Part shown: piece by piece, positions 8,724-40,588 of the stretch
How the letters are laid out: each line of letters begins with the position of its first letter
How positions within the stretch are numbered: the first letter of the stretch is position 1
Virus record (IMG/VR): IMGVR_UViG_3300042923_000601
Span: 62,001-126,000 of that record
Strand: one strand, 5' to 3'
DNA: 64,000 nt
Notes under the pieces: generated by a model
What the model saw: only the letters and a program-made list of their open reading frames with translations
Told to the model about the DNA's origin: nothing
Databases searched by the model: none
Position numbers and translations under genes: made by a program

Positions 8724-10577
8724 TTATTGGGTCTCACCGCGACGGACTGCTTTCTCTTCCAGATATTCTGGTCTAAAGACAAGCTTTGGTCGCATATCAT
8801 TGATCAGTCTCAGCTTAATATATCCTTGCTCATTCCGGACATACGGGATGAACCTTGGCTTCATCGTAAGACGAATATAGCCATCATCATTACGAACATG
8901 GGCTGGACGTACGAGCTGAATGTAGCCCTCTTCATTTCTGAAGCCGGAATACTTCGCTGCCCATACTCTACGTTCATGGAAGTGCTTGGCTGCCATGCGA
9001 TTGTTGCGGAGCCGAAGATAGTATGCACCGTCTTCCCGCCCTTTGATCTTGGCAATGCGTTTCTTCAGTTTCTTCTCGTAGTTTCCTTTGGCTACTGATT
9101 CTGTATCACCAAAGTAACCGCCGTCATAAATCTTACAGAATGGGGTCAGCATACCCGATGCCCCCGGTGAGCTAGGCGAGATCGCGTTGAGTTCAAACCG
9201 TCCCAGATGGGATGGGTACACGTCACGCTGCTCGTCTGTAATACGGTCAGACCGGAGACCTTGCTCTCCAGTAACGGAGAACTTCAGTCCATTCAGTGCC
9301 TGCAGATCGTTCACGTCGATGTTGTAACGGAACAACGGACAAGCATTCGCCCCGCCGAATAGACTCTTGAACAGAGAGTACTCGTCGAACCGAAGTTGTC
9401 TTGCAATGGAGCCTGCTTCAGGGTTAGATAGATTGAGGATATAGTTGAGCTTGTACTTCGCAATCTTCCCGAAGTAGGCCGCGATATACTCATTCGTCCG
9501 AACCCGGCGATTCTCCAGATCGTTATTGTCAATATTGCGAAGATAGTTGAATTCTCTCAGCACCCAGCGGCATACTGCATAGGAATCGATCTTATCCTTA
9601 TCATCAATCCGCAGAATGTTACGGGTGGTAGTATCCAGCACGTTCTTAAATGATCTCAGAACGTCATGACCTTTATTAAGCTGGCTATTCGCCGACTTTG
9701 TGAACTGTGCACCAAGACGTTTCTTCCAGACATCAGGATCATAGAGCGTATCGATGCGATCTTTCTTAAACATGCCGATCAACATTCCGACGAAGATACG
9801 GAAGAAGTTGTCCGACTCAAATAGCATCCGCTCAGCCTGAATCATAAGGTTAGAATTGATCTTGAAGTAATGATACATCTCGGCATCCTTTACCTCTGTC
9901 GTGATGTCGCAGAATTTAGAGTAGCCAAAGTACGAGATCGTATCAAGGATACTCATTTTTCCCACGAAATAATGCAGCGGGTTAAAGGTTTTCTTGAATA
10001 GGTTGATGATCATGGTATCAACCTTGATAATCTCACCTGTAGTGACATCCAGCAGGGATACTTTCTTCTTCGTATCCTTATTAAACTTCGCCCGAATGTG
10101 TGTCTTCAGGATGACATCGCCCTTCTGATTATAGATGGCATTGTCTACAACCTGGAACATGACGAGTGTCTTATTGCCATTCACAAGGAAGTGGTACCGG
10201 TCAATATACTTTGGAATCAGAATCGTATTCTCAATGTAATTAAGACCCGTATCCTTATCCTTATAGCCGTTGATTTGAATCTTAAACCGCAGAGCGTCGA
10301 ACGCGGTATACTGAATCGGAATTAGCTTTTCGATCTTCTGCTTGAGAATCTTCTTACTCTTGATGTTATTCCGATTGAGCCGGACGTCAAGCTTAGATGG
10401 GTCGGTAATATACTCCACATCTTTCAAGTACACACCCGGTATCATCTCAAATGACTTCAGATCATCAACGATGAATTCATACACTTGCTTACCGAGCCGT
10501 CTGTCAAATAGCTCCTCATTTACGTCTCCTGTCAAACTGTCGGAATACTCTGCTACCATCTTCCCAAGGAAACCCAT
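8724..10577 (-). CDS. Multisubunit RNA polymerase beta subunit, N-terminal part (probably non-virion RNAP)
   Basis: RDVYPSHLGRFELNAISPSSPGASG matches the RpoB motif RDVHxSHYGRxCPIETPEG. The ORF ends shortly after this region with a repetitive tail. Confidence 0.85.
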   Translation of the reverse strand: MGFLGKMVAEYSDSLTGDVNEELFDRRLGKQVYEFIVDDLKSFEMIPGVYLKDVEYITDPSKLDVRLNRNNIKSKKILKQKIEKLIPIQYTAFDALRFKIQINGYKDKDTGLNYIENTILIPKYIDRYHFLVNGNKTLVMFQVVDNAIYNQKGDVILKTHIRAKFNKDTKKKVSLLDVTTGEIIKVDTMIINLFKKTFNPLHYFVGKMSILDTISYFGYSKFCDITTEVKDAEMYHYFKINSNLMIQAERMLFESDNFFRIFVGMLIGMFKKDRIDTLYDPDVWKKRLGAQFTKSANSQLNKGHDVLRSFKNVLDTTTRNILRIDDKDKIDSYAVCRWVLREFNYLRNIDNNDLENRRVRTNEYIAAYFGKIAKYKLNYILNLSNPEAGSIARQLRFDEYSLFKSLFGGANACPLFRYNIDVNDLQALNGLKFSVTGEQGLRSDRITDEQRDVYPSHLGRFELNAISPSSPGASGMLTPFCKIYDGGYFGDTESVAKGNYEKKLKKRIAKIKGREDGAYYLRLRNNRMAAKHFHERRVWAAKYSGFRNEEGYIQLVRPAHVRNDDGYIRLTMKPRFIPYVRNEQGYIKLRLINDMRPKLVFRPEYLEEKAVRRGETQ

Positions 10578-10660
10578 TTTACTCCTCCTTTATATGCAAA
10601 AAAGTAAGGAAGGATAATGCTACTTCCCTACCCTTATATAATATCTAACCTAGTTTGCGT

Positions 10661-11431: not shown

Positions 11432-11453
11432 AATAAATAGAATGCGAAAGTAT

Positions 11454-11483
11454 CCCCACTATAGGATACCTATAGTGGGGTTT
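11454..11483 (-). terminator. Probable terminator
   Basis: Stem CCCCACTATAGG/CCTATAGTGGGG just downstream of the 11496 stop. Confidence 0.6.
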
Positions 11484-11495: not shown

Positions 11496-12200
11496 TTACG
11501 CCATGCTTTCAACCAGGCGGTCGTTCTTGATCGCTTGTTTGAATTCCTTGCTGGCGACAAATCCAATTTGCCATTTGTCCTTAACCCGTTCGATGGTGTA
11601 AGTGCCTTCACCCTGAACTTCATACTTGATTGGCTTCTCAGGGTCTTTGCTGGTGGCAAGGACATGCAAGATTGTTGATACATGAATAGCGACCATCATC
11701 TGCGCCATGTACCGGTCGAGAGCGACACCACGATCGTTTTCGTTAGGGCGTTGTACCCATTCACCTTTGATGGTGTCGTACTCGTCAAGCTGGCAGCAGT
11801 GAATAACCGTATTCAGGAAGATTTCATCCGTGATTTGCTCTTGGATTTCTTCCACCAACGAGAGGTTTTCATACGGTTTTTCTTCGAACTTGTCGAACTT
11901 AGCCATAAGGGCTTTTTCGTTAGTGAGAGAGAACGTCGGGTTCAGTGTATGGGAATCACCGGTTTTCCGGAGTGCTACACCGTAACGGAATGGTCCAACA
12001 TCCAGCGTCTTTTCATCGCTAGGGTCTTTTTCCATCATCAGATATAGGGACCGACCGATTGCGGCGGAAATGCCTGCGTCCACCATTGCTTGAACCGGGA
12101 TATCGACTACAGCCGCTTTCGCAGTGCCGTTTTCTTGGCGTTCGCATTGCGTAACATGAGTTGCTGTAAGATTTGTCAATTCAATAAACGATTTTGCCAT
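11496..12200 (-). CDS. Hypothetical protein, paralog of 13233..14000, HU/IHF-like motifs
   Basis: SD present and early promoter at 12279-12289. C-terminus GEGTYTIE..IGFVASKEFKQAIKND. Confidence 0.55.
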   Translation of the reverse strand: MAKSFIELTNLTATHVTQCERQENGTAKAAVVDIPVQAMVDAGISAAIGRSLYLMMEKDPSDEKTLDVGPFRYGVALRKTGDSHTLNPTFSLTNEKALMAKFDKFEEKPYENLSLVEEIQEQITDEIFLNTVIHCCQLDEYDTIKGEWVQRPNENDRGVALDRYMAQMMVAIHVSTILHVLATSKDPEKPIKYEVQGEGTYTIERVKDKWQIGFVASKEFKQAIKNDRLVESMA

Positions 12201-13232: not shown

Positions 13233-14000
13233 TTATTCGGCTTCCTCTGTAAGCTCAAGTGCTAATTCATCGTTCTTGATTGCCATTTTATATTCCTTGG
13301 ATGGAACGAAGGCAATCTTCATTGACTCACCAGCATCTCCAGGTACGATTCCTTCCAGTACATAGGTACCTTCAGGCAGGGGAAGTTTATGTGCTTCGCT
13401 GGTATTTTCCGATACCAACAGGAAGCAGATTGTACAAGCGTACACAGATACGATCACCGCAAGATCGTCCAAATTATATTGCAACCCCTCGACGATTGGA
13501 TCATTCTGAATCCATTCTTCGGTTGCTGGATCGAATACCTTGAAGTCCAGATAGTTACGTAGGACGTTCAAGTAGTCATCCCGTTCAAAGAGAACGTCTG
13601 CAAAGATATCGATCAACTGCTCGTTCACCATGTCGTGTACAGGCTTCTCAAAGAGGTGTACCGGCCAGTATTCACCAGCAGTATCTGTGGATGAGAAACT
13701 TGGTTGGAATACGATATTGTCACCCGACTCACGCTGGCTGATTTCATATGTGAACGGCCCGATTGTCAGCGAAGGTGTTGCGGAGCTATCGCCATTAGCC
13801 AGTGTCAACCGCAAGAATGTCGGGATAGACTGGGCGATTGAATGTATAATATGGTTGGTGACATCGAGCATAACCTCACGATGCTCTACACTAAGGTTGT
13901 CGAAGTCTTCTACCTTAATAGGAAGTTTCACAGAATCCTCCGTGAAACGTTTAATTCCTTTCAGCATCAGTTCGTTAAAGTAGTGGTTTTTCGTAGTCAT
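13233..14000 (-). CDS. Hypothetical protein, paralog of 11496..12200, HU/IHF-like motifs
   Basis: SD and early promoter at 14040-14050. C-terminus PEGTYVLE..IAFVPSKEYKMAIKND. Confidence 0.55.
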   Translation of the reverse strand: MTTKNHYFNELMLKGIKRFTEDSVKLPIKVEDFDNLSVEHREVMLDVTNHIIHSIAQSIPTFLRLTLANGDSSATPSLTIGPFTYEISQRESGDNIVFQPSFSSTDTAGEYWPVHLFEKPVHDMVNEQLIDIFADVLFERDDYLNVLRNYLDFKVFDPATEEWIQNDPIVEGLQYNLDDLAVIVSVYACTICFLLVSENTSEAHKLPLPEGTYVLEGIVPGDAGESMKIAFVPSKEYKMAIKNDELALELTEEAE

Positions 14001-14445: not shown

Positions 14446-16686
14446 TTACACAGAATCAATTTTATACTTCTCAAGGAATTCAGCCAGCGTATAAATCGGT
14501 TTATTTGACTTACGCGCAGCTTTCGCCTTGGTACCACCTAACCGTTCAGGGGTCACGACAAGAATATCGTACTTCCCACTATCGGTTATCTTATAGTTCA
14601 GAGAATCGCAAATCTTGTTAAACTCATCATTTGACCGGAAGCCAGATACGAGGACAACCTTGTCGTACTTCTTATTTTCCTCGTAAGTGACGGTAATCAT
14701 CCCGCAGAGTTCGTTCCACTCGTCATATTTCTCCACGAGTGCTCGTGCAAACTTAGGGGCATTGTCCTTTATTCCCGGTACGGATGCGATAGCTTGTGTA
14801 AATTCTCTCATTGCAGGTGAATGTTCTGAGCCTGTGGATTCAGCAACCAGCGCGTTTGTCCACATGGTTGTAAACCCAAGTAACCCTAAATGATCGATGA
14901 TCTTCTTAGCTGTAGACGTCCGAAGGTTCGGAATCCGAAGAAGGTCGATCGCCTTTGAGGCTGGGAGTGGGGCTGATATTTTAGCCTGATGTTCTTCCCA
15001 TGCCTTATCTAGGTTAAGGCCCGTGAGGACTTTGGACAGGTCTTCCTTGTCCATCTCTAGGAATTTCATCGTATTTGTAATGCCAATATCAACTAGACCT
15101 TTAGCAGTTTCTTCACCGAAGAAGTCGATGCCGAATACTCGAATGGTCTCAAGTACTCGTCCAACCGCTGTACCTGGACAGTCTGGATTATCACACACCA
15201 GCATATCCTTCCGAGTAGCTAGTGGGGATTCACAGTGGATACACTTTGTTGGAAGCTTGATTTTGGCACCACTTAAATTAGGCTTACAGGTAGCATCCTT
15301 GTCGATATATCCCATGACGTCAGCGTTGTAGGATACGATGACTTCATCGCCTACCCGAAGATCGAGCCGTTCAAACCGGGTTACGTTATTGACAGGTGCT
15401 TTGTCATAGACAACCCCGTTGAATTCGATCTCATCAAATAGAATATTGTGACCCATGAACCCTTGGCGACCTTGGGTTGTCAGGATACCTTTAACATGCG
15501 TCCGCTTAACCATTGCATCAAATTTATATGCAATCTGCCAGCGGTTTTTGTTATTGGATCGACCAAGTGCTTTCCGATCTTCGCTATCGCTCAGTGTCAG
15601 TACCACACCGTCGATGCTGAAGTCCAGACTGCTACGCTTCTCGCTAACGATCTGAATGTACTCCTGAATGCGAGTAAGCAGATCATCAATATCACCATAA
15701 ATGGTCTGGATAGGTTCTGGGGTGAATTCATACGACGCCCTAGCCTTTAATCCATTCATTACAGGAACCCAGTCGACATGCTTAACCGCTTCGTCGTCTA
15801 CACCGATTGGAACCAGTGACAGACAGGACGCATAGTCGGCGAATTCCTCTTTGCTCATGGAGTCATTCCCGTAAGCTGTGACCATTCGTTTAATAGCGGC
15901 TGCAGCTGCTGCCCGTCGAGTCTTATATGTAACCCCGGTAAGCTCACTCAGCCGTTTACGGCCACTTTCCGTCACCAGCGCCTCATATTGAATCCCAATT
16001 CTCACAGGGGCAGCATAGGGAACCAGCCCGGATGGTGTAAGGAAAGGCCGTCTGTTGATTACGGTCCCCGTCATATCAACCCCGAGGTTATTAACAATAT
16101 CGCCTCTGGAAGTTGCCTTAGTGGGACGGTAGCCTTCGATGGTATCACCCGGTTTCACGTTCCCTGTAATCAGTACACAGGTTGCCGATACCGAGCTACC
16201 ATCAAACTTCAAATCAAGCGAGACGTTCAGTTTCTTCTTACCCAGCTCAGCCATAGCTCTCCGAAGGAACTTCTCGACACTCATCTTATCGCCGATGTCA
16301 TAAACATCGTACGCCTTGTCAAGTGTACCCACAAGCTCCGGGAAGTCATGAGCTACATTTCTAAGCCCTGCACTTGAACTGGATTGGAACGGTTCGTCGT
16401 GATCCTGCTTATATCTCTCCAGCATATTGTCATAGATATAGTCTGGGAGAAGCTTGATCGTCATATCACCGCCGAGTGTCCAGTTGAAATCATAGATGGC
16501 TTTACTGGCCATGATGAGGTTTGCGGCTGCCTGAATATCATCATTTGACAACCCTGCGTCATCGGACTGTGCAAACCGGACTGCAAACTCTTCAGTTTCT
16601 TTTGCGTTAATGAATCCGGCAGCGACAAGATATTTCTTATCCTGTACTGCATCCACAGCCTTTTTTGCTTTTTTGTGCGCTGACAT
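14446..16686 (-). CDS. ligA: NAD-dependent DNA ligase
   Basis: DLKFDG adenylation motif, TSRGD, IDGVV, RWQIAYKF, C4 zinc finger (CIHC..C..C), HhH region, C-terminal BRCT-like domain. Confidence 0.95.
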   Translation of the reverse strand: MSAHKKAKKAVDAVQDKKYLVAAGFINAKETEEFAVRFAQSDDAGLSNDDIQAAANLIMASKAIYDFNWTLGGDMTIKLLPDYIYDNMLERYKQDHDEPFQSSSSAGLRNVAHDFPELVGTLDKAYDVYDIGDKMSVEKFLRRAMAELGKKKLNVSLDLKFDGSSVSATCVLITGNVKPGDTIEGYRPTKATSRGDIVNNLGVDMTGTVINRRPFLTPSGLVPYAAPVRIGIQYEALVTESGRKRLSELTGVTYKTRRAAAAAAIKRMVTAYGNDSMSKEEFADYASCLSLVPIGVDDEAVKHVDWVPVMNGLKARASYEFTPEPIQTIYGDIDDLLTRIQEYIQIVSEKRSSLDFSIDGVVLTLSDSEDRKALGRSNNKNRWQIAYKFDAMVKRTHVKGILTTQGRQGFMGHNILFDEIEFNGVVYDKAPVNNVTRFERLDLRVGDEVIVSYNADVMGYIDKDATCKPNLSGAKIKLPTKCIHCESPLATRKDMLVCDNPDCPGTAVGRVLETIRVFGIDFFGEETAKGLVDIGITNTMKFLEMDKEDLSKVLTGLNLDKAWEEHQAKISAPLPASKAIDLLRIPNLRTSTAKKIIDHLGLLGFTTMWTNALVAESTGSEHSPAMREFTQAIASVPGIKDNAPKFARALVEKYDEWNELCGMITVTYEENKKYDKVVLVSGFRSNDEFNKICDSLNYKITDSGKYDILVVTPERLGGTKAKAARKSNKPIYTLAEFLEKYKIDSV

Positions 16687-17111: not shown

Positions 17112-19223
17112 TCACTTCTTCTTAGCAAGATATTCCGGCTTGAAGACCAGTCGGATATCCTTCTTGGACATGTGTGAGATGCTATCTACCACCTGATCCT
17201 TAACCGGAGTCAAATCGTTGAACTTGAACTTCAACTTAAGCCCACAGGTCAGGAATGTGGCATTAAACATGTCAACAACGCGAGAGTTATGGTTGTCCAT
17301 GTCAATTTCAAGGTCCTCTTTGAAGATGTCTACGTTAAGCAGACGGTTGAACTCGCGGCGACCTACGACCGATGTGCAATAGAGCCGGGTCATGTAGTTA
17401 ATCGCTGCTGGGTCATTACAGAGATCAAGAACGTCCATTTCCATATTACCAAGACGGATCGCCTGATTGTTAAACAGGGCTGTCCCTCTGCTATAGGCAT
17501 TGGACTTAATCGGCAGGAAGGTACGTGGATTGATTGTACCCTTCGATCTGGCTGAGAACTTTGTAATCGGTTCGTGCTTCAACCGGTATACATAGGTCGG
17601 AGCCACAATAACCTTACGCTGGATCGTTGAAGTCGTACCGTCTGGGTTCTTAAGGATCAAACGGGACTTCTTCGGATCAAACTTCTCAATCAACTTCTGA
17701 TAATTCTTAAAGCTGACGCTGTGTTCAGCCGATTGGAAGATGACGAAATCCTTTGTGATTTCAGCCAAGAACTGCTTGCGCTCATCGGCTTTCAGGGATT
17801 CATACATCCGTTCAACCTGCTTACCTTGCTTTGGATTAACCAGCGCGAGGAAGTCAAGAATCCCCTCGTACTTCTTCTTCGGAGATTCATCACTGTTCAG
17901 AATCTGATCCATAATCCAGTTTTCTTCGTGCTCACTCGACTGTGCAGGGTTGAGCCGCCCAACCATACTAAGCGCGTTGTATTCGATCTCAATATGCTTC
18001 CCAGTCTTCTTGTCGATAGGCATCATGTCGTCAGGGACGATCTCACTGATAACCCCCTTGTTACCAAACCGCCCAACCAGCTTAGAGCCTTGCTTCACTT
18101 TGGATGTGCTGGCTACTGTAATAACGATAATCATATTGTCGAACACTGAAGACATCTCCGTATTCCACCGGGTATGTTTACCGATACTCAAAGCATCCTT
18201 TGCACGAGCGTAATAGATACCCATCGTGTCGGAGTAGCTATTCTTCGGGTCAGATGATATCTCTTCGACTGTGTCACGAATCTCTCTCCAGAAATTTGTG
18301 ATCGAGTCCAGATACCAGTTTACCTGCTTGTGGGCAGCGTCAGTTGGAAGCTCATCGTGCGGGGTATTGCAATAGATGTCAATATCAACAACACGGGAGC
18401 ATGGGCTACTTTCTGTTACGTACGTTGTATCCCCGAACCTACGCTCTCTAAGGTTCTTATTCTTCAAACCGTAGAGGGCATTGCTATAATCCACACGCCG
18501 CCGTGCTACCAGAATTCGATCCTTTACCTTTTCACCGATATCAGGAAACGCTTTATACGACCCAGTGTTGCCGCCGTACAGGTTAAGGAAGATATCGTTA
18601 TTATTCTTAGGGATGGTAAACTGATCGACCGATGTTGTTTCTAGCTTAGTCCGCAGCGATTCCGAAATGCGAAGCGCATCCTCAACTAGAGCAACGTCGG
18701 ATAGATAGGCTGTTTCTGCATTCACGCCGAGGCGATAGTTCATATCGTCATCATATGCGTTCGATTTATACACAACATCGCCTTTCTTGATCGTAGAACC
18801 CACTTTCTTGGAGTCCATATACTCATTATTGATAAGAGTACCGCTAGATTCAGCGAAGGATTCCACTTCATTTCGAACGAGTAGGTCATATCGGTTGCTG
18901 TTCTTATCCTTTACGACAAGAACGTATACCATATCACTACCCTTGAACTTCTGAATCTTCTTCACAATCTCATAGTTCTTGTCTGCCTTCTGAAAAGAAG
19001 TTGACCGGTCGCCGTACATTTTCTCCCACCCTGTAGACATGCGGGCGATCTCCGGATTATTAAGATTCTTAGCCTGTGGTATTTGAGAATATACCATCGC
19101 GGCCCGAGATGAGTTAACGTGATTGGCAAGCGGTGTCATCAGTCCGCTACCATACACATAGTCCATGTTCTTGATGCCTGCAGCTATTCGGTGCAAGTCC
19201 TCCATCTGTTCGGGTTTAATCAT
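17112..19223 (-). CDS. RNA polymerase beta subunit, C-terminal part (probably non-virion RNAP)
   Basis: NHVNSSRAAMVYSQ, GSKLVGRFGNKGVIS, YRLKH, RLGNMEMDVL (RpoB DPBB and C-terminal motifs). Early promoter at 19293-19303. Confidence 0.92.
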   Translation of the reverse strand: MIKPEQMEDLHRIAAGIKNMDYVYGSGLMTPLANHVNSSRAAMVYSQIPQAKNLNNPEIARMSTGWEKMYGDRSTSFQKADKNYEIVKKIQKFKGSDMVYVLVVKDKNSNRYDLLVRNEVESFAESSGTLINNEYMDSKKVGSTIKKGDVVYKSNAYDDDMNYRLGVNAETAYLSDVALVEDALRISESLRTKLETTSVDQFTIPKNNNDIFLNLYGGNTGSYKAFPDIGEKVKDRILVARRRVDYSNALYGLKNKNLRERRFGDTTYVTESSPCSRVVDIDIYCNTPHDELPTDAAHKQVNWYLDSITNFWREIRDTVEEISSDPKNSYSDTMGIYYARAKDALSIGKHTRWNTEMSSVFDNMIIVITVASTSKVKQGSKLVGRFGNKGVISEIVPDDMMPIDKKTGKHIEIEYNALSMVGRLNPAQSSEHEENWIMDQILNSDESPKKKYEGILDFLALVNPKQGKQVERMYESLKADERKQFLAEITKDFVIFQSAEHSVSFKNYQKLIEKFDPKKSRLILKNPDGTTSTIQRKVIVAPTYVYRLKHEPITKFSARSKGTINPRTFLPIKSNAYSRGTALFNNQAIRLGNMEMDVLDLCNDPAAINYMTRLYCTSVVGRREFNRLLNVDIFKEDLEIDMDNHNSRVVDMFNATFLTCGLKLKFKFNDLTPVKDQVVDSISHMSKKDIRLVFKPEYLAKKK

Positions 19224-19306: not shown

Positions 19307-20617
19307 TTAATCAAAATCTACCCAGCCAAGCTTCTTAGCTTCCTCAACGTCGCGCTGATGATCTTCAAGAGCCAGATACATAGCGTCAAGACGTTGACTG
19401 GATGTTTCCTCTGCACCGCGACCAGTGTCAGTAGACAGCATGGATTGCAGTGAAGGCAGAGCGGCTTCAACCAAAGCCATCATAACTTCCGGATCGCGCA
19501 GGGCGACTTCTTCAAACGTTTTACGGGTGAACCGTGTGCGTTGAAGACCCGGGATGAATAACTGCGTGCTTGGACCTTGAAGTAAGCCCAGCTGGTGTAC
19601 ATAATGAAGCAGCGTCAGCGCTTTGGAGAATCCACCGCGACGTTGGTCGAAGATCATTTCGATTGGCACATTAGACGCGTTTGTACGAGATTTCAGCATA
19701 CGGGCTTCAGCAATGAATCCCGGGATACCATACTCACACTTGTCCGACTTGCTCATATCGAACTTCTTGAGAACCTTGAGTTTAATGATGTTATTCGCCA
19801 AATACAAGCTCGCCGAACCACCCGGCATCGACTCGTCCTGAGTCAAATACATATGCTGGGATGGCTTAGGCAAGAAGCCTGTGTTAACGTTAGGGTTAAG
19901 ATGGTTGACACAGTTCAAGGATACGTTGGCTGTTTTGCCATATCCAATCATCTGAGTCAGTACACCTTTATTGAACTTTGCGGACTGTGCTGCGATCATG
20001 TTATGCGTTACGTTATCAACCGTTGTGTCCTTCTTGGACAGGTCAATATCTTCCGACTTAAACATGGCAAGCGAGTCCAGCAAAACAGCGGACGGGTAGT
20101 ACTCCCAGATGTCTTCGTTGTATAGATTCTTGACCCCGGTATTATAGTAGTACTCTTTCCGGTTGTCAATCTTAACCTTACAGTGGTCGGCAAACATGTC
20201 AACCACCGTTTCAGCACCGCGTTCCCGGTACATTTCATACGTATTACGCAGAAGTGATGGAGGGATACGCAGTATCTTCATCGGACGCTGCATGGTGGAT
20301 GCCATTTCAAGGTCATGATGCTGTACTGCTGACATATCGCCAAATTTATGGATACCGGATGCTGACAGCTCAATAGCCAGCGCCGATTTACCTGTACCCG
20401 ATAGGCCAATTGTAGTGGTCATGGTGCCATTTACCAGACCAATCAGGTCAGTATACCCAGTTGGTCGGTCGTATTCGTCATACGCTGTTACCCGGACCCC
20501 GTTTGCGTAGTCGAGCGGTAGGAACCCAGAGGGAGTCGAAATCTCCGTAACAATTTGATTACTTGCACCCTTTTTCTTGCCTTTTCGTTCGTCACTTACC
20601 TTCGATAATAGGGACAT
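19307..20617 (-). CDS. uvsX: RecA/UvsX-like recombinase
   Basis: Walker A GLSGTGKS, Walker B LLDSLA, VNHL and PGGSASLYLA motifs of the RecA fold. Confidence 0.85.
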   Translation of the reverse strand: MSLLSKVSDERKGKKKGASNQIVTEISTPSGFLPLDYANGVRVTAYDEYDRPTGYTDLIGLVNGTMTTTIGLSGTGKSALAIELSASGIHKFGDMSAVQHHDLEMASTMQRPMKILRIPPSLLRNTYEMYRERGAETVVDMFADHCKVKIDNRKEYYYNTGVKNLYNEDIWEYYPSAVLLDSLAMFKSEDIDLSKKDTTVDNVTHNMIAAQSAKFNKGVLTQMIGYGKTANVSLNCVNHLNPNVNTGFLPKPSQHMYLTQDESMPGGSASLYLANNIIKLKVLKKFDMSKSDKCEYGIPGFIAEARMLKSRTNASNVPIEMIFDQRRGGFSKALTLLHYVHQLGLLQGPSTQLFIPGLQRTRFTRKTFEEVALRDPEVMMALVEAALPSLQSMLSTDTGRGAEETSSQRLDAMYLALEDHQRDVEEAKKLGWVDFD

Positions 20618-23732: not shown

Positions 23733-23887
23733 GAATAATTTCCTCCTAATAGTTCGAATTCTGACCAATTATGTATGGTCATACATCTCTATAATATATA
23801 AGTAATAAATCAATTGACGGTACGAACTCTCCGGCTAACTCTGCCGGAGAGCGACCTATTAGGAAGAGCCCTAAGACTCCTTTCTGA

Positions 23888-32085: not shown

Positions 32086-34461
32086 CTACGTATCGATTTT
32101 CATCAGATCGAATTTGGCATTCTTCATGTGTTGCTTGCGGAGCTTTGCATACTTTTCTTTCTGGGATTGGTGCGTGGCCAGCTTTTCAAACGTAAGCTCA
32201 CCATTTCGAGCAACCAACCGTTGGCTATGTCTAGCTTTGCGATCAAGCATTGTTCTAGCCAAATCTTTACCGTCCATTTCACCCAAACCTTTATACCGTC
32301 GAACGACCTTAGGTTTATACTTATCAAAGTCAATGACGATCTGGTAGAGGCTCATGCCGTTTTCATTCTTATTGTCGATTGAATAGCCATAGAATGCATG
32401 ATCCTTGGTAATTTTCGACGCGGTATCTAAGAAGTCGTCAGCATATTCGAATCGGTTGAACTCGTCATTCTCAGTAGTTCCGATGATAGCGATGTGACCA
32501 TGGAATGGTTGTACCTTAAGGAAAGGGAACCGTGCCTTTAAAGCCTTCTGCCAAGTCGGAACTGTCTTTTCGGTAAAGCCAATGCCCACATTAGCAACAA
32601 GGAACTCACATAGTGTATCACTAATACCATGATGAACTGCTGCTCTGTGAATGTCATTCACGTATTCTTCCGTATCAACCAGCATGGAAATGACGTCTTC
32701 TTCAGGCATCTTTTTACCATTCAGGTATACAGAGTGTTTACTTGCAAAGTTATTCTGGGTAAGGGTCATAAAGTCGCGGGTAGAAGGTAGGAACTGTGTC
32801 TTCCCGTCCTTTATGATCTCATAAAGCGGAGGTACGACGCGATATACACGGCCAGCATCTACCAGAGGTCTGAAGAACTGGTATATGGTTGTCCCTAGCT
32901 GGGCCGCTATTTCACCACCGTCGCTATCTGCATCAGTAGCAAAGTTAATACGATCAAATGGGCAGTCTTCAAGATTAAATGTCTTTCCGATGCCACATTG
33001 CATGATATTGTGTAAGTGTTTTACTACTGCCTTATCATTCTTCAGCTTTGTCAGCACTTCAGTTGGTGTCATATCAAACGTGTTGTCATTCTTACCACGG
33101 ATTGACAGAAGTGCTTGAGAATGAGGGTCACACTCTGATTCCATACCGCCCTTTGCGGACTTCCCTTCAACGATAAAGAGTTCCTTGTAAGGGGATGTTG
33201 AAGTTTTGGATACTGGAGTATACTCCTCAATGCGATTTTCCGAAAACATGTTGGTTACGTCTTTCCTAACTTTCTTCCGACCAGACTCAGCTGCGATACG
33301 AGCCTTCGCATTTTGCTTAACAACAGAAGCCAGTTTATTCAGCTTAGCCGTGTCGAGCATGCGAATTGATCTCCGAACCGAATCCATAACAAATCGTTTT
33401 GCCAGTGCATCATCCAGAGCTTCTTTATGCTGGCCACGGAATTTACCTTCGACATTTTCCAGCCGAACGGATATAATCCCAACCAAACCAACACGGAAGT
33501 CTTCTGCCTTAAGCTTCATTCCTTTATCTTGACCTGTCAGGTAGACATCTTCCATATGCTTTCTGAGCACTGTGATAAGAGCCTCTACGAGACCGTCAGT
33601 ATGGGAACCACCGGACTTGTTGAAGATATTATTGGTGTATGCCAGAATGTCAGATTCGATTTCACTCTCCGGGTTGTAACCGAAGGTGAACTCCACTGCA
33701 TCCCCACCGAATACACCAATGCCTGATACGATAGGCTGGACAACTTTCTTCTGAGTCATGTAGTCCTTCAGGGAGTTATTCTTGAAGACCTTGGTAATTT
33801 CTTGACCATCGGCCTTCTTTCCCTTAAAGATGATAGTCGTTCTTGTACTGACATAACTCTTGGTCGTAACCAGATTGAGGATATCCTCACAGGTCACATT
33901 GCGGTCTTTAAAGAATCGGGTAGGGTCAAACGTCCACTCCAAGTAAGTACCGTGTTCTTTGGACTTACCAGTCTTGGTGGAAGTGCGAACACCGTCAACG
34001 TATTTGATTTCGGTGTACTTACCTTCACGCTCAGACCGGATGAACATTTCGGCAGTCAGGAAGTTGACCAATTTCAAACCTGTGCCGTGGACACCACCGG
34101 ACGAACCGTATGCTTTATTCTTACCCATCTTAGCACCGGTCGTTAAGACTTCACACATCTTGAAGATCATGTTATGCGGGAAGCCGCGACCTTCGTCTTG
34201 CACTGAACAAACTCGTGTTTTCTCATCATAGGTGATAATTACTTCGCTACCGACAGCGCCGAAGTTCTCGGTCTCGTCAATAGCGTTAGAGATGGCCTCA
34301 TCCGCCAAATGGATGATCCCTTCCTTATCAATATTCGGAAGGTAGTTGGTTGGGTTTTGACGAACCCGTAACCTATCTTCAGTGATAGACGTTACAGAGC
34401 TGTCATCATAAGCAAAAGGGTCGCCGCCAATGCGGTGGCGTCGATGGATGATAACTGTCAT
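32086..34461 (-). CDS. gyrB: Type IIA topoisomerase subunit B (GyrB/ParE-like)
   Basis: GHKL motifs EAISNAIDE, DEGRG, GVHGTG; TOPRIM motifs IVEGKSA and TDADSDG; RYKGLGEM. Confidence 0.94.
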   Translation of the reverse strand: MTVIIHRRHRIGGDPFAYDDSSVTSITEDRLRVRQNPTNYLPNIDKEGIIHLADEAISNAIDETENFGAVGSEVIITYDEKTRVCSVQDEGRGFPHNMIFKMCEVLTTGAKMGKNKAYGSSGGVHGTGLKLVNFLTAEMFIRSEREGKYTEIKYVDGVRTSTKTGKSKEHGTYLEWTFDPTRFFKDRNVTCEDILNLVTTKSYVSTRTTIIFKGKKADGQEITKVFKNNSLKDYMTQKKVVQPIVSGIGVFGGDAVEFTFGYNPESEIESDILAYTNNIFNKSGGSHTDGLVEALITVLRKHMEDVYLTGQDKGMKLKAEDFRVGLVGIISVRLENVEGKFRGQHKEALDDALAKRFVMDSVRRSIRMLDTAKLNKLASVVKQNAKARIAAESGRKKVRKDVTNMFSENRIEEYTPVSKTSTSPYKELFIVEGKSAKGGMESECDPHSQALLSIRGKNDNTFDMTPTEVLTKLKNDKAVVKHLHNIMQCGIGKTFNLEDCPFDRINFATDADSDGGEIAAQLGTTIYQFFRPLVDAGRVYRVVPPLYEIIKDGKTQFLPSTRDFMTLTQNNFASKHSVYLNGKKMPEEDVISMLVDTEEYVNDIHRAAVHHGISDTLCEFLVANVGIGFTEKTVPTWQKALKARFPFLKVQPFHGHIAIIGTTENDEFNRFEYADDFLDTASKITKDHAFYGYSIDNKNENGMSLYQIVIDFDKYKPKVVRRYKGLGEMDGKDLARTMLDRKARHSQRLVARNGELTFEKLATHQSQKEKYAKLRKQHMKNAKFDLMKIDT

Positions 34462-35323: not shown

Positions 35324-35821
35324 TTACCAGTTGATGCGTTTTGCTTTGTTCTTCTTCTTGCCTTTACCTTTACCCTTCTTCTTATCCTTGTCTTTCTTTT
35401 TCTTCTTGCCGCCCGAATTAGTTGCTTCTTGGATATCCTCGAATGTGCCAGGCAGGCTGCGAAGAATATCCTTATCGAATTGCTGCATCAGGAGTAACTG
35501 CTTGTCGCTCATCTGAATAGTACCGGCGGCCACATTGGCGCGCAGCTCAGACAGCATGGATTTTACAACTTCAACCGAAGCGTTAGTGGATTCCGGGCTG
35601 AGCATGTCTCTGTCGACCACAACCACGTCACCGCACTTCTTGCACTTCGCTTTTTCAACTTCGCCTTCCATGAAAGGAATCAGCCATGTTTTACCCTTCT
35701 TGGATACGTGAGGGCAAATAGACTGGAACGATGCAGCCTGCGCTGCAAGCTGTTCTTGGCCCTGCTGGAAGTCTTTTTGCAATTTCTTCATCTGCTTCTG
35801 AAGCTTCTTCATGTCTTTCAT
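35324..35821 (-). CDS. Basic protein with Zn-ribbon-like Cys/His and poly-Lys tail
   Basis: CPH..CKKC, N-terminal coiled coil, C-terminus KKKKKDKDKKKGKGKGKKKNKAKRINW; early promoter at 35905-35914. Confidence 0.65.
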   Translation of the reverse strand: MKDMKKLQKQMKKLQKDFQQGQEQLAAQAASFQSICPHVSKKGKTWLIPFMEGEVEKAKCKKCGDVVVVDRDMLSPESTNASVEVVKSMLSELRANVAAGTIQMSDKQLLLMQQFDKDILRSLPGTFEDIQEATNSGGKKKKKDKDKKKGKGKGKKKNKAKRINW

Positions 35822-36199: not shown

Positions 36200-37390
36200 T
36201 TAACATGCGTAGATGGCGATATCCTTTCCTCGGGTTACCCCTGTATACCGAAGACGTCGCATAAAGTCCGCATCTGCTCTTGGCATATATTCATCCCAGT
36301 ATAATACCGATGGGAACTCAGACCCTTGAGCAATGTAACCTGTGATGGCGTGACCAAGCTCAAACTTGGCTCCTTTATTCCACCAATTATCAATCTTATC
36401 TGGCCCACATTCCGTCCGGAAGAAATCTACATCAATCGGTAGTCCAGCATAGTAATCCCAGTCAATATAGTCTGGACGGAAGTCAATCTTAATCGTGCGG
36501 TTACGTGTATCTATACTTCTCGGGTCTACGGCATGATGAACATAGCCTAATATCCCATTAGTCAAAGCAATATCCCCAAGCTTACGGTTCCAGTCATTCT
36601 TCCGGCAGATGATCTTATCACCCTTCACAGGAAGATTAGACTTAATGCCTAGTATTTGCCTACGGATACGATCATTGAAATAGTTCCGCATCTTGTTTGT
36701 AGCGCACACGACCATATCTACTTCCTCAAGGACAACATTGGTGATCTTATCCTTAGGAATGATAAAGGCGTTATTCTTAAACGAGTACTCCTTATTCGGT
36801 ATCTCTTGGCCGAGGCGGATTCGAGTTGCCAATTCAACAATACCCGAATCCTTTCCTTGGCGAGTGATCTCAGTCAAACTGTAATCTGGGTTCTGGAGGA
36901 AGTATGATTCCCCGAAAGGTGGACCCAGCTGGTGGATATCACCCGTGACACAAATAGGTAATCCGAATGATAACGCAACCTTGGCCATTTCAGTATCCAC
37001 AAACCCACCTTCATCAATAAAGAGCATCTTGGTGGATTTAGGTAAGAAATTCCTCTTCTTAAACGCCATAGAGGTTAGAGGTCGGCCATTCACATAAATA
37101 ATACGACCATCACTATCCGTCTTTGGCACATCAATAGTTTCCATAAGCTGAGAGTGCATGGAGTAGGCGGGCAAGCCCTTTAAACTTAAGTTAGATGCTG
37201 CCCTACCTGTGTATGCCATGCATAATACCTCGGTCTCAAGGTCAAGACCCGTTTTTCTGATCATCGGGGGTACTATGGTTGTTTTACCCGTACCCGCCGG
37301 ACCATCGTATTCAAACGTTTGCTGATTTTGCGTACGGTACCAACGTTGAAACTCGTGCATGCATTCTTTCTGGCCGTCAGTGTATTCCAT
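36200..37390 (-). CDS. dda: SF1B helicase (Dda/RecD-like)
   Basis: GPAGTGKT, FIDEG, GDIHQL, LTEITRQ, AQGSEF, YTGVTR. Start probably MEYTD at 37390, coupled to the upstream stop. Confidence 0.9.
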   Translation of the reverse strand: MEYTDGQKECMHEFQRWYRTQNQQTFEYDGPAGTGKTTIVPPMIRKTGLDLETEVLCMAYTGRAASNLSLKGLPAYSMHSQLMETIDVPKTDSDGRIIYVNGRPLTSMAFKKRNFLPKSTKMLFIDEGGFVDTEMAKVALSFGLPICVTGDIHQLGPPFGESYFLQNPDYSLTEITRQGKDSGIVELATRIRLGQEIPNKEYSFKNNAFIIPKDKITNVVLEEVDMVVCATNKMRNYFNDRIRRQILGIKSNLPVKGDKIICRKNDWNRKLGDIALTNGILGYVHHAVDPRSIDTRNRTIKIDFRPDYIDWDYYAGLPIDVDFFRTECGPDKIDNWWNKGAKFELGHAITGYIAQGSEFPSVLYWDEYMPRADADFMRRLRYTGVTRGKDIAIYAC

Positions 37391-37391
37391 A

Positions 37392-37883
37392 TTAACGTTT
37401 CTCAATCTTGTTATCAATTTGCAGGATATACCTGATAAGCCCTTTAAACGACTCGTGCCCCATTAGAGCTTTCAGAAGCAGGGCGCATTTTAATACCGAG
37501 ACATTCTTAACCCCCGTAAACTTGACTGTGCGGATGCGCCCGGTTTCGTCTTCGATGATCTTAAGCTCCCCATCGAACTTACCATCTGCAGCAGGCCGGT
37601 CGGTAAATACCGTTTCACAGTCCTGGATATGGGAAAACATATTAATGAAGAACTCTGAGTGTGCCTGGTTTACAAATGGCCTTGCAACAACACCCGAGTT
37701 CATTGCCGATAGGTATGATTTATATTCAGGCAAGATGAGGGGTTTATCCTTATATTGCAAGGGCCTAAAGCCCATCTCAAGCAGCTGGAAGTTAGAGCCG
37801 ATTTCAACATCCAAAAGATCAACAATCATTTTCGTCAGGTCGTATTCTTTGATGTGTACAAATCCTTTTTTCGTCTTATTCAT
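37392..37883 (-). CDS. Hypothetical protein
   Basis: ORF coupled to dda; start at 37883 has an AAAGGA SD. Confidence 0.55.
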   Translation of the reverse strand: MNKTKKGFVHIKEYDLTKMIVDLLDVEIGSNFQLLEMGFRPLQYKDKPLILPEYKSYLSAMNSGVVARPFVNQAHSEFFINMFSHIQDCETVFTDRPAADGKFDGELKIIEDETGRIRTVKFTGVKNVSVLKCALLLKALMGHESFKGLIRYILQIDNKIEKR

Positions 37884-37913
37884 TATTATCGATCCTTTCA
37901 AGGAGGTTTTAGT

Positions 37914-38261: not shown

Positions 38262-38273
38262 GGAGGTATTCTG

Positions 38274-38657: not shown

Positions 38658-38665
38658 TGGTGGGA

Positions 38666-40588
38666 TTACCCCACCATCTCCTTTTGTTTTTGTCTATGAC
38701 GGTCATGAATAAATGATAGCACGATGCGGCCTTGAGTGTCGCGTACATATGCTCCTTTCGTATTCTCAGCAAACACCTTCTCAAAGGTGACAGCTGCAGA
38801 TTCATCACTGACCTTAGCGGTCTTATTTTCCATCCGTTTACGGATTCTAAAGGACTCTTCGATGGTATTAAAGTTAACAGTATCAGATTGAACCTCAATA
38901 ACCTGCTCTTGACGTTGGTTCGTAGGAAGTTCCTTACGTTCGCGCATCGAGCGATTTTTCTTGGTTACATTCTCGTTCATGTTATCATCAAGAGTTATTC
39001 GAGACAGAGGTTCAGCCAGATGGATATCGTCCATAAGCTTAATTCCGTTCTCAGGGTCAAATGGATGAGCCACATAGGACTCGAACATCTTCTTCTTATT
39101 CTTCTTCTTGAACTTCCCTGACTTACCACGGAATTTGATTTTCAGGAAGCACATATACTCGTTTCCATCTGTATCTTCTTCACGATGTACAAAGAAGGCC
39201 GCGTCAAGGTTCTTAAGCATCGCCCATGACTCGGAGATTGCACCCCGACCCAGTGAGCGAATGACGTCTGTCCGGTTACCTTCAACTTGAGAGTCGATAG
39301 TATCCGAACCTTTACGGTTGATCTGGCCTGCACCGATAACTGGAATTTGAAGGCGTTTGGACAACACGGCATAATCGTTAGCCACTTGTGCCAATTCCAG
39401 ACGAAGGTCAGGTAGGTTTGCAGATGAGCGAATACGTTCAATATAGTCATGGACAAGCGCGATAACTTCTCGTCCAGTATCTTCGATATCTTCAATGATG
39501 GAGTAGATGTCAACCGTGGAGATTTCCTTATCGTCATAGTACTTGATGATAAAGTCAATATCATCCTTGGTTGTGAGTTTGAACCCGCCTTTTGTTCTGA
39601 GTAAGTGAACCACTTCTTCTGGAGTGTAGTTAGACAGCTCATCAGCGGTAACGGTCATATTGAATAGCCGTTCCAGTGTTTCTGCGAGCGAGTTCTCCTG
39701 AGTGATATACAGAATTGCGGGTCTTGCTGTAGGGTCCTTTGGTACAACCTTATTATGGTTTCTAAGCCATTCACAGATGTTCAGGAGGACAACTGACTTA
39801 CCGACACCCGGTAAGCCAAAAAAGAGGAATGCACGAGCTGCTTCAAATCCTCCACCTAGTAATTCATTAATGGCTTGTGACCCTGTCTGTAGTCGGTTAC
39901 GAGGTGATTGTAATCGTTCAATTAACACCTTAGCTACCGACTCAAAGTTACCATCTGACAGGTCAAGGGTCATCATTTCATCATTGAAGTTCTCACTGGT
40001 TCGAATATCGTGCAGCATATCAATCAGGAGTTGCTTGAACCCCTGATTCCATTCACGAATAGACGTATAGTTAGATGCTTCAAGGTCTTCATACATTTTG
40101 AATACGGCTTCTTGATATCCAAACGCGAAGCCATTGGTTAACTTATCGGCGATCTTCAGATTCAAGTGATGTACCGCGCGGCTATTAAGCTTCACCTGAT
40201 TAATTTCAGGTACAACTTCTTCGCGGATCATCTCTGGGTTATCACAGTGCTCCATTGCATAGCTCAGCATCAACTTGCGGTTATTAAGACCTTCCGCAAG
40301 CCGAGCTGTCAGGAGCATGTCAAGGAAATTGATACGGGCTTTAATCCCCTGATTTCGTTTATACACATTCACATTGACCATTTGGACAAGCGAGTGTAAG
40401 TTAATCAGAGCAGCCCGGGTGATATGGGCTGATGTTACATCATATGCAAAGGCAATGAAGTTATCTAGTGTCTCAATATCGAAAGGAATTGGAACTTTCT
40501 TAAACCGGATACCCGGATGTGGCTTTATTTTTCCCGCAGTACCGTTTGCGACGGCAGCCATAAAGTCCTGCTCTTCGACCTGTATCAT
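38666..40588 (-). CDS. dnaB: DnaB-like replicative helicase
   Basis: FGLPGVGKS, HDYIE, GAGQINR and ISESWAML (SF4 motifs). Confidence 0.88.
   Translation of the reverse strand: MIQVEEQDFMAAVANGTAGKIKPHPGIRFKKVPIPFDIETLDNFIAFAYDVTSAHITRAALINLHSLVQMVNVNVYKRNQGIKARINFLDMLLTARLAEGLNNRKLMLSYAMEHCDNPEMIREEVVPEINQVKLNSRAVHHLNLKIADKLTNGFAFGYQEAVFKMYEDLEASNYTSIREWNQGFKQLLIDMLHDIRTSENFNDEMMTLDLSDGNFESVAKVLIERLQSPRNRLQTGSQAINELLGGGFEAARAFLFFGLPGVGKSVVLLNICEWLRNHNKVVPKDPTARPAILYITQENSLAETLERLFNMTVTADELSNYTPEEVVHLLRTKGGFKLTTKDDIDFIIKYYDDKEISTVDIYSIIEDIEDTGREVIALVHDYIERIRSSANLPDLRLELAQVANDYAVLSKRLQIPVIGAGQINRKGSDTIDSQVEGNRTDVIRSLGRGAISESWAMLKNLDAAFFVHREEDTDGNEYMCFLKIKFRGKSGKFKKKNKKKMFESYVAHPFDPENGIKLMDDIHLAEPLSRITLDDNMNENVTKKNRSMRERKELPTNQRQEQVIEVQSDTVNFNTIEESFRIRKRMENKTAKVSDESAAVTFEKVFAENTKGAYVRDTQGRIVLSFIHDRHRQKQKEMVG

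Follow-up and report, generated by a model that had tools for sequence, protein, structure and literature searches.

The 64,000-nucleotide window analysed here, positions 62,001 to 126,000 of IMG/VR record IMGVR_UViG_3300042923_000601, derives from an uncultivated giant phage. It encodes a split non-virion RNA polymerase (nvRNAP) beta subunit, a GyrA-like topoisomerase subunit and a DnaB-like helicase. All genes are on the minus strand. The features relevant to this work are as follows.

8724-10577 (minus): gene for the nvRNAP beta-N half (617 aa), ortholog of AR9 gp105, ending in MRPKLVFRPEYLEEKAVRRGETQ
8727-9098 (minus): beta-N C-terminal extension (residues 494-617, pI 10.4); a long helix, three tandem units and the terminal motif
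8913-8939 (minus): unit 1, RNEEGYIQL
8868-8894 (minus): unit 2, RNDDGYIRL
8850-8870 (minus): fourth, degenerate copy of the strand motif, LTMKPRF within IRLTMKPRFI
8811-8837 (minus): unit 3, RNEQGYIKL
8760-8789 (minus): terminal motif in beta-N, PKLVFRPEYL (LVFRPEY at 8763-8783), followed by 11 more residues
17112-19223 (minus): gene for the nvRNAP beta-C half (703 aa), ortholog of AR9 gp089, ending in KKDIRLVFKPEYLAKKK
17115-17231 (minus): beta-C C-terminal extension (residues 665-703, pI 9.8)
17127-17156 (minus): motif in beta-C, IRLVFKPEYL, followed by AKKK and the stop codon
29612-32071 (minus): gene for the GyrA-like type II topoisomerase A subunit (819 aa), beginning MSLRLVFKPEYIYSK
32036-32065 (minus): motif at the GyrA N-terminus, residues 3-12, LRLVFKPEYI; an AGGAGG sequence lies 8-10 nt upstream of the ATG
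38666-40588 (minus): gene for the DnaB-like replicative helicase (640 aa)
38717-38743 (minus): single unit in the DnaB C-terminal tail, RDTQGRIVL, within AYVRDTQGRIVLSF

The first-pass annotation had noted a short motif, [IL][RK]LVF[KR]PEY[LI], at the termini of beta-N, beta-C and topoisomerase A, and a related sequence in the DnaB tail. We confirmed that this observation is real. One detail differs; beta-N was said to end with the motif but runs 11 residues past it. The copy inside the beta-N repeats, IRLTMKPRFI, is an addition.

We next sought to understand if the recurrence could be due to chance. In a six-frame translation, LVF[KR]PEY had no other match. A relaxed pattern gave 4 hits in 3 proteins, compared to 0.00 in 300 shuffles. 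RLVFKPEY is the only exact 8-mer shared by different proteins of the window, apart from one tandem paralog pair (shuffle null 0.02). All 8 codons of RLVFKPEY differ between beta-C and GyrA. Hence, as proposed, conservation is at the protein level. The R[ND]xxG[YR]IxL unit, present three times in beta-N and once in the DnaB-like tail, hit only these two proteins in 94,343 aa of the window and related loci. The patterns were defined after seeing the data; their nulls are near zero but they remain post hoc. With respect to length and recurrence in unrelated proteins, the peptides behave as a short linear motif in the general sense. The first-pass annotation also listed an internal Dda sequence, IKIDFRPDYI (36467-36487), as a weaker copy that may just be part of the fold. 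This sequence is conserved in all 8 Dda orthologs, whatever happens to the terminal motifs. It is part of the Dda fold and is not a tag.

The claim that the peptides lie outside the conserved catalytic domains was also confirmed. In tblastn comparisons, beta-C was 35% identical to AR9 gp089, annotated as a non-virion RNAP subunit, and the alignment stopped at residue 664 of 703. Beta-C also matched Pfam RNA_pol_Rpb2_6 (PF00562). For beta-N, which had a PHROG 'polymerase' hit, similarity to AR9 gp105 (30% identity) and relatives covered residues 107-493 only. The carriers are therefore the split beta subunit of a multisubunit nvRNAP of the AR9/PBS1 type. In GyrA, the Pfam DNA_topoisoIV domain (3.7e-76) starts at residue 50, and DNA_gyraseA_C was also detected. 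In the helicase, the divDNAB match (3e-21) spans residues 204-538 of 640, and DnaB_C was also detected. The beta-N extension had no tblastn hit in 50,697 phage records, and only clade members were found among 1.84 billion representatives. AF2 gave a confident helix in this extension and pLDDT 53-77 for the repeats. For full-length beta-C, AF2 did not dock the tail, and pLDDT was 46-72 over the last ~150 residues. Both are monomer models with shallow alignments, which cannot separate a free tail from one that packs on beta' in the assembled enzyme.

We then examined conservation in homologs. The peptides keep their positions across about 15 related metagenomic genomes. The beta-C tail is kept in homologs P0002-P0018 and the GyrA N-terminal peptide in orthologs P0121-P0132. 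In the beta-N units, R, G and I are invariant in 15 orthologs. In seven paired genomes, all three proteins keep a basic strand peptide at the same terminus. The proposed link between the DnaB tail and the beta-N repeats is also right, and is clearer in relatives. Thus, all six DnaB orthologs seen in relatives carry YVRNxxG[YFLC]I at the same place, and the DnaB tail and beta-N units match as Y[VI]RNxxG[YF]I. In one subclade the match extends over about 13 residues (IKINEDGPF versus IKMNESFF). Some derived changes are shared within a genome. F to P occurs in both beta-N and GyrA of contig 93484, and P to Q occurs in both beta-N and beta-C of the 215-kb genome. Within-genome similarity exceeded that of permuted pairings (p about 0.014). 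However, in the more distant members of the window's own clade (contigs 210198, 246901 and 257735) the three termini share only a generic basic-strand character, and part of the permutation signal could come from slow lineages simply keeping an ancestral state.

Three AT-rich sister clades, labelled L020, L023 and L024, each carry their own version of the peptide, x-P-V/F/M-x-[RK]-hydrophobic. It is found on beta-N and beta-C tails, a ligase insertion, Zn-ribbon N-termini and an HNH endonuclease C-terminus. The L020 version, [SC]PV.., gave 7 hits in 5 proteins. The L023 version, [NV]PF.., gave 6 hits in 3 proteins. The L024 version, [NQKT]PM.., gave 9 hits in 6 proteins, plus one more Zn-ribbon protein in a further related locus, L025. 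Shuffle nulls were at most 0.07. The matrix of genomes against versions was diagonal apart from one P-V-type hit in L023. The two ligase copies sit at aligned orthologous positions and follow each genome's version. An HNH/endonuclease VII-type protein, found only in L024, ends in LINPMRF, matching the VNPMRF end of beta-C. The set of carriers differs between clades. GyrA carries the peptide here but not in L026. Conversely, ligase carries it in the AT-rich clades but not here.

Taken together, these data are best explained by a portable, lineage-specific short linear docking motif, a reading that we consider somewhat more likely than not. In this view, the peptides are a short basic beta-strand or hairpin, with a hydrophobic or aromatic anchor next to a proline, displayed on flexible terminal extensions. 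The beta halves, with several copies, would give multivalent, high-avidity binding. Other DNA-transaction proteins carry one copy at an N- or C-terminus: GyrA and the DnaB-like helicase in this genome, and ligase, Zn-ribbon proteins and an HNH endonuclease in sister clades. All copies in one genome would be read by one receptor that co-evolves with them. This would bring the late RNA polymerase together with replication and repair enzymes on the phage DNA. Our analysis establishes the recurrence, terminal position, low-confidence modelling, conservation and concerted genome-specific variation of the peptides; that they bind a protein pocket, and that co-localisation results, we infer. The first-pass annotation had inferred a phage-specific docking or localisation tag gathering RNAP, topoisomerase and helicase on a common hub, such as a nucleoid protein, clamp, tubulin-positioned factory or compartment importer. 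That interpretation is partly supported. There is comparative support for a tag read by one common partner, rather than part of each enzyme's fold, but no sliding clamp, chimallin or other obvious hub was found among about 45 window proteins screened with Pfam and PHROGs; about 82 kb of the 246,689-bp genome was read. The closest working analogy for the putative receptor is a sliding-clamp or PCNA-type hub, as in T4 gp45 with gp33/gp55 and the polymerase. A tubulin-associated adaptor, a nucleoid protein, a site on the RNA polymerase itself or a host protein are equally possible. No description of such a tag was found in the literature searched.

If one receptor reads these tags, a large and almost wholly uncultivated group of jumbo phages organises transcription, replication and repair through a private peptide code. 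This group has a split multisubunit RNA polymerase and a divergent tubulin, and its nearest isolates are AR9 and PBS1. The peptide, of 8-14 residues, is directly usable for pull-downs, reporter fusions and multimer modelling. The natural versions (LVFKPEY, P-V, P-F and P-M) provide specificity controls and a co-evolution signal for finding the receptor. A mobile HNH endonuclease carries its genome's version, which hints that the code matters for access to phage DNA and could be a barrier between phages. By contrast with the phage nucleus, in chimalliviruses no linear signal could be found.

A first alternative, which we regard as unlikely, is that the peptides are a sorting signal. They would direct proteins into, or onto, a phage-built replication compartment or tubulin-organised factory, and be read by an importer or adaptor. 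This is a special case of a common receptor but the outcome, localisation across a barrier rather than assembly on a hub, is different. Consistent with this, the tags sit at extreme N- or C-termini, as classical signals do, and the clients are all proteins that must reach phage DNA. They include the apparently mobile HNH endonuclease that carries its genome's version. A PhuZ-like tubulin is encoded in the same conserved block in every tag-bearing clade seen (the window, L010, L020, L023, L024 and L027), although this link rests on co-occurrence only. Genome-specific versions recall the species-specific import seen in chimalliviruses (PMC11087766). Conversely, no chimallin, PicA/Imp factor or other importer homolog was detected in the window or the flanks read, which exclude most of the genome. 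The nearest isolates (PBS1, PALS_2 and phiR1-37) encode msRNAPs but no chimallin (bioRxiv 10.1101/2023.02.24.529968). UvsX, Dda, GyrB and ligase in this genome have no tag, and gyrase in the L024/L026 genome has none. Tandem copies and internal ligase copies are also unusual for a sorting signal. In its strongest form, similarly unlikely, the peptide would be a portable address label and the first linear sorting signal known in a bacteriophage. It would send the nvRNAP, gyrase, helicase, ligase, small Zn-ribbon factors and even selfish HNH endonucleases to a phage-built, tubulin-organised replication and transcription site, in a jumbo-phage lineage that lacks chimallin. Each lineage would use its own private version, so that proteins of co-infecting relatives are kept out.

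Direct binding of nucleic acid by the tails is also improbable. Here, basic beta-hairpin arms would tether DNA-transaction enzymes to phage DNA or RNA without a protein receptor. The tails are strongly basic (pI 10.4 for beta-N, 9.8 for beta-C and 9.7 for DnaB), all clients act on DNA, and the repeats look like two-stranded basic ribbons with an invariant Arg. However, what changes in concert between genomes is a hydrophobic anchor (V, F or M after the proline; LVF...Y here), which is what a protein pocket, not a DNA backbone, reads. Furthermore, the first 28 residues of GyrA, which hold the motif, are not basic overall (pI 5.2). Resemblance to HU/IHF (DNABII) arms or other DNA-binding families was tested and not supported. 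There was no Pfam Bac_DNA_binding hit up to E=10, an hhalign probability of 0.3 against AR9 HU, shuffle z-scores at or below 0.05, and no PDB hit.

Equally doubtful is a model without a separate receptor. The peptides would pair with each other, strand to strand, or with a strand of the RNA polymerase, holding the split beta halves together and pulling single-copy clients into a polymerase-centred cluster. In every clade the constant, multi-copy carriers are the two beta halves, whilst other clients vary. The window motif IRLVFKP resembles the last conserved body strand of beta-C (GLKLKFKF here, GLRLVFER in L024), and mutual pairing would also force concerted change. However, AR9 assembles its split beta without such tails (PMC9209446), and pairing of like-charged basic strands is unfavourable. 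In L027 the beta-C tail is acidic while the beta-N tail keeps basic repeats, which does not fit same-with-same pairing.

Recognition sites for a protease, unfoldase or chaperone, as terminal degrons or Hsp70-type sites that control turnover or folding of these enzymes, suggested by the terminal location and by a hydrophobic core flanked by basic residues as in ClpX N- and C-motifs and DnaK sites, or by KPE|Y as a possible Glu-specific prohead-protease site, are very unlikely; tandem copies on an essential polymerase and internal ligase copies are not expected of degrons, such sites tolerate much variation and would not need identical 8-mers, and orthology of the carrier polymerase to the non-virion AR9 enzyme makes prohead processing unlikely.

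The peptides can be compared with several established systems. In the sliding-clamp systems (the bacterial beta-clamp motif QL[SD]LF, the PCNA PIP box QxxLxxFF, and the gp45-binding acidic LxxLF C-terminal tails of T4/RB69 gp43, gp33 and gp55), one pocket on one hub reads a short peptide at a terminus or in a loop of many unrelated DNA-transaction proteins, including polymerase, ligase, nucleases and transcription factors. T4 couples its late RNA polymerase to the clamp in this way. None of [IL][RK]LVF[KR]PEY[LI], RNxxGYIxL or x-P-[VFM]-x-[RK]-hydrophobic fits these consensus sequences. The tag sequence has no Gln and a different spacing, and it needs a proline and basic residues. Here, the RNA polymerase catalytic subunit itself carries tandem copies. 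With the SSB C-terminal tip (DDDIPF) and the T4 gp32 acidic tail, one short peptide organises many genome-maintenance enzymes, as is proposed here, but the hub carries the peptide and the enzymes carry the pockets. Those peptides are acidic, whereas these are basic and hydrophobic. Import into the chimallivirus nucleus by PicA/Imp factors shares with the proposed tag system selective, species-specific handling of nvRNAP, replication and recombination proteins, and even a homing endonuclease, and those phages also encode tubulin; the present clade is nearest to PBS1/AR9, which lack chimallin (10.1101/2023.02.24.529968). The T4 capsid targeting sequence, the N-terminal ~10 residues of internal proteins cut after Glu by the prohead protease, is likewise a portable terminal peptide, and the GyrA copy MSLRLVFKPE is 10 residues long and ends in Glu. 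However, the beta-N and beta-C copies are C-terminal, and the carriers are orthologs of a non-virion polymerase and replication enzymes, not virion internal proteins. Finally, the C-terminal domain heptad repeats of eukaryotic RNA polymerase II are also tandem short repeats on a tail of a multisubunit RNA polymerase subunit, flexible there and presumably here, and the tails here could similarly serve as a recruitment platform. The subunit is different (beta, not beta'/Rpb1), the sequences are unrelated, and here the same peptide also occurs on the presumed partner enzymes.

The window forms part of the 246,689-bp uncultivated viral contig IMGVR_UViG_3300042923_000601 (about contig positions 62,001-126,000, same orientation). 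The G+C content is about 45%. The genes of interest lie on the minus strand, in a replication and transcription block.
Start of the window (-): terminase and major head protein genes
8724-10577 (-): nvRNAP beta-N
14446-16686 (-): NAD-dependent ligase
17112-19223 (-): nvRNAP beta-C
19307-20617 (-): UvsX-like recombinase
22530-23768 (-): PhuZ-like tubulin
29612-32071 (-): GyrA-like subunit
32086-34461 (-): GyrB-like subunit
36200-37417 (-): Dda/RecD-like helicase
38666-40588 (-): divergent DnaB-like helicase

The nearest named phages are the uracil-DNA jumbo phages AR9 and PBS1. Identity is about 35% to AR9 gp089, annotated in its record as the non-virion RNAP beta C-terminal subunit, and about 30% to gp105, the beta N-terminal subunit. 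A 544-aa ORF at 3508-5142 (+) runs antisense to the major head protein gene (3472-5163, -). This is most likely a shadow ORF and not a gene. Extending the analysis along the contig added about 18 kb of flank, which contained only structural genes without tags. A giant ORF of 3,986 aa, as called in the source records, starts just before the end of the window (~62370 to the end, +) and continues in the adjoining locus L006.

We first sought to confirm that the short peptides reported by the first-pass annotation are present. The translations show them where they had been placed. Thus, beta-N ends in VRNEQGYIKLRLINDMRPKLVFRPEYLEEKAVRRGETQ, beta-C ends in HMSKKDIRLVFKPEYLAKKK, GyrA starts with MSLRLVFKPEYIYSK and the DnaB-like protein ends in AYVRDTQGRIVLSFIHDRHRQKQKEMVG. 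The observation therefore holds. We next asked if this recurrence exceeds chance, and several results show that it does. In the six-frame translation, LVF[KR]PEY has exactly three matches, in beta-N, beta-C and GyrA. A relaxed pattern adds a fourth copy, IRLTMKPRFI, inside the beta-N repeats. This gives 4 hits in 3 proteins, against 0.00 in 300 shuffles. Note that the regex patterns, here and in the sections below, were defined after inspection of the sequences. In an unbiased scan for exact k-mers, RLVFKPEY is the only 8-mer shared by different window proteins, other than one tandem paralog pair (null 0.02). That pair (49953-50573 and 50539-51183, both -) has no known function and shares 19 exact 8-mers at the C-termini (KYADAIKYKVVELSSGDGDEGCLYIE). 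Conversely, k-mer sharing with a reduced alphabet was too noisy to use. All eight codons of RLVFKPEY differ between beta-C and GyrA. Hence, a DNA repeat or gene conversion is excluded. The pattern [RK][NDSTG]..G[YFLCMRW][IVR].[LIV] hits only beta-N tails and DnaB tails in 94,343 residues of window and related-locus ORFs. A scan of all of IMG/VR with the motif alignment found only 13 stretches of [RK]LVF[KR]PEY, at least one of them in this contig. This exact form therefore appears to be rare in IMG/VR.

The first-pass annotation also listed an internal Dda sequence, IKIDFRPDYI, as a weaker copy that might simply reflect the Dda fold. This sequence is conserved in all eight Dda orthologs, regardless of what happens to the terminal peptides. 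Hence, it belongs to the Dda fold and was rejected as a tag. Two unrelated small proteins of the window share a different ending; those encoded at 35324-35821 (-) and 43247-43690 (-) end in KRINW and KRKINW respectively. The first is a coiled-coil protein with a long poly-lysine tail, possibly a nucleoid-type DNA binder, and its orthologs keep the lysine tail and an aromatic end.

We next examined where the peptides sit. Homology to AR9 ends at residue 664 of 703 in beta-C and at residue 493 of 617 in beta-N. The AR9 proteins stop about 20 residues after that. The 138-residue beta-N tail has no tblastn match in 50,697 phage records. Among 1.84 billion protein representatives, it finds only members of its own clade. 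In GyrA the Pfam domain begins at residue 50 and, in the DnaB-like protein, the domain ends at residue 538 of 640. The tails are basic, with pI values of 10.4, 9.8 and 9.7 for beta-N, beta-C and DnaB. AF2 models the beta-N tail as one long confident helix, followed by repeats at pLDDT 53-77 with no compact fold. In a full-length beta-C model (pTM 0.75) the last ~150 residues, tail included, are at pLDDT 46-72 and the tail is not docked. These monomer models show no cis fold and no confident packing of the tails, but they are not decisive and cannot exclude packing in the assembled enzyme. GyrB has a conserved ~16-residue basic and hydrophobic N-terminal extension (34411-34461, -; MTVIIHRRHRIG here and MTIRILWYMRKDK in relatives). 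In one subclade both GyrB and GyrA start with MTIR. The extension may be a further, divergent tag, or the known N-terminal strap of GyrB.

To assess conservation within the clade of the window, we compared about 15-18 metagenomic relatives (47-88% identity), which keep all the features. The beta-C homologs P0002-P0018 end in M[SD]KK.[IV][KR][LIV][VF]F, followed by KPEY, KQSY, KDN or GGWDKL. GyrA orthologs start with MWRIVPKPEYL, MYRLRFKPEF, MYRLKLKTRF, MTIRVRPIPGFF or MTYIIRPKKGFW. The beta-N orthologs keep 3-4 tandem RNxxG[YF]I units, with R, G and I invariant, plus a terminal basic strand. All six DnaB orthologs seen carry one unit, KYVRNE[KR]G[FLC]I or LYVRNPNGYIRL. In one subclade the DnaB tail (YVRNSNGFIVIKMNESFF) and the beta-N end (YIRNNDGFIEIKINEDGPF) match over the unit plus about 13 further residues. 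Among the DnaB and UvsX orthologs of loci L012-L018, one subclade has DnaB tails that end in EW[QR][DE]F and UvsX tails that gain ..NRKK[FY]W[YF]K... These look like further terminal peptides of another type, with aromatic and acidic or aromatic and basic tips. We then paired the proteins by contig, which showed derived changes shared within a genome. Contig 93484 has RIVPKP in both beta-N and GyrA. The 215-kb genome has K-Q in both beta-N (RLVRKQN) and beta-C (KLVFKQS). Within-genome similarity exceeds permuted pairings (p about 0.014), although this test can be inflated by slow lineages keeping an ancestral state. In the three most distant genomes the termini share only a generic basic-strand character.

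The strongest evidence comes from sister clades. More distant beta-C homologs (about 30% identity) end in tandem repeats such as PVKRLRRDVVRR or NPFMRIT. We retrieved three such loci, L020, L023 and L024, with extensions L025 and L026. They have 25-27% G+C and the same gene order: tubulin, a ~300-aa protein, UvsX, beta-C, ligase, a ~200-aa paralog-family protein, beta-N and then Zn-ribbon proteins. About 20-40 kb of each relative was read. Each genome has its own version of one peptide, x-P-[V/F/M]-x-[RK]-hydrophobic. In L020 (SPVKRL type) there are 7 hits in 5 proteins: beta-C twice, the beta-N tail, ligase twice, and the N-termini of a 56-aa ORF and of an 89-aa Zn-ribbon protein (MISPVRRL). 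In L023 (NPFMRI type) there are 6 hits in 3 proteins: beta-C three times, ligase twice and the beta-N tail. In L024 (NPMRF type) there are 9 hits in 6 proteins: beta-C, including its C-terminus VNPMRF; the beta-N tail twice; ligase twice; a 134-aa ORF; a Zn-ribbon N-terminus (MINPMKF); and an HNH/endonuclease VII-type protein ending in LINPMRF. A second Zn-ribbon protein starts MNPMIM. The HNH/endonuclease VII-type gene (L024, 12153-12860) is inserted between beta-C and ligase in this sister genome only. It looks like a mobile homing endonuclease that has acquired the tag of that genome at its C-terminus. Shuffle nulls are 0.00-0.07. Apart from one P-V-type copy in L023, each version is absent from the other genomes. 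The two ligase copies lie at aligned, orthologous positions in a ~57-residue insertion. They read ICPVKKI/ISPVVRM, INPFVRI/VNPFARV and VNPMRYI/INPMRMR in the three genomes. A hydrophobic anchor that switches V/F/M in all carriers of a genome at once is what is expected when a single pocket reads them all. A fifth locus, L027 (beta-C 39% identity), keeps basic G-R-hydrophobic-hydrophobic-I-H repeats on beta-N but has an acidic beta-C tail.

Taken together, we conclude that the LVF[KR]PEY and RNxxGYIxL peptides of the window are the local version of a family-wide, portable, putative docking motif. In this view, the motif is multi-copy on the two beta halves of the late polymerase and single-copy on a changing set of DNA-transaction proteins. 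The analysis establishes the recurrence, position, conservation and concerted variation of the peptides. Conversely, that they bind a protein pocket, and that co-localisation results, is inferred. The first-pass proposal of a phage-specific docking or localisation tag that gathers these enzymes on a common hub is thus partly supported. The closest working analogy is a hub of the clamp or PCNA type, including the coupling of T4 late transcription to gp45 through the tails of gp33 and gp55. However, the sequences do not fit any clamp motif, and no clamp gene was seen in the about 82 kb of this genome that was read. The principle of a short peptide read by a hub is established. This family of peptides, its carriers (a polymerase catalytic subunit with tandem copies) and its genome-specific versions appear not to have been described. 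In the paper library searched, no paper joins jumbo phages with short linear motifs, or the phage nucleus with a localisation-signal motif. For chimalliviruses, the literature states that no conserved signal sequence could be found in nuclear proteins, and that recognition is by folded surfaces (PMC11087766).

An alternative is that the peptides are a sorting signal for a compartment or tubulin-organised factory. The tagged endonuclease and the ever-present tubulin make this attractive. The tubulin of the window is a very divergent PhuZ-like protein (Pfam Tubulin 2.4e-4, PHROG 'tubulin PhuZ' 8e-6) with no tblastn match in 50,697 phage genomes. It is conserved next to the tagged genes in every related clade and has a conserved aromatic C-terminal tip (FLEEF). 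However, the nearest isolates lack chimallin (10.1101/2023.02.24.529968), several DNA enzymes carry no tag, and tandem or internal copies are unusual for a signal. A 740-aa ORF looks like a virion or fibre protein, not chimallin. A second alternative is direct nucleic-acid binding. The tails are basic, but the residue that changes in concert is hydrophobic. An HU/IHF-like origin was tested for the RNxxGYIxL units and was not supported. A third possibility is tag-to-tag, or polymerase-internal, strand pairing. Against this, AR9 assembles without such tails and L027 pairs an acidic tail with a basic one. A degron or chaperone site was the remaining alternative considered.

Finally, we examined two conserved neighbours of the tagged genes. 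A ~300-343-aa protein (21458-22489, -) is encoded right after the tubulin in all clades and has a low-complexity N-terminus. Its structural neighbours in the Atlas are helical-repeat (TPR/MIF4G-like) proteins at TM about 0.4, from a low-confidence model. This is only a lead for a peptide-binding partner. The second neighbour is a paralog family of 200-255 aa, with 1-5 copies per genome in the loci read, always near beta-N. Members are encoded at 11496-12200 (-) and 13233-14000 (-) in the window, in the related loci L008, L009 and L010, and at 16127-16720 in L020, 17412-18029 in L023 and 17743-18339 in L024. The family has no Pfam, PHROG or PDB match, and the Atlas again gave only low-confidence leads. 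An HU-like reading of the 234/255-aa proteins was tested and not supported. The conserved C-terminus of the family (..EGTYT..IGFV.SKE[FY]K.AIKND) loosely resembles the tag of the same lineage (SKEFKQAIK compared with KPEYLAKKK, and EMKRLIKDD compared with PVKRLRRDV).
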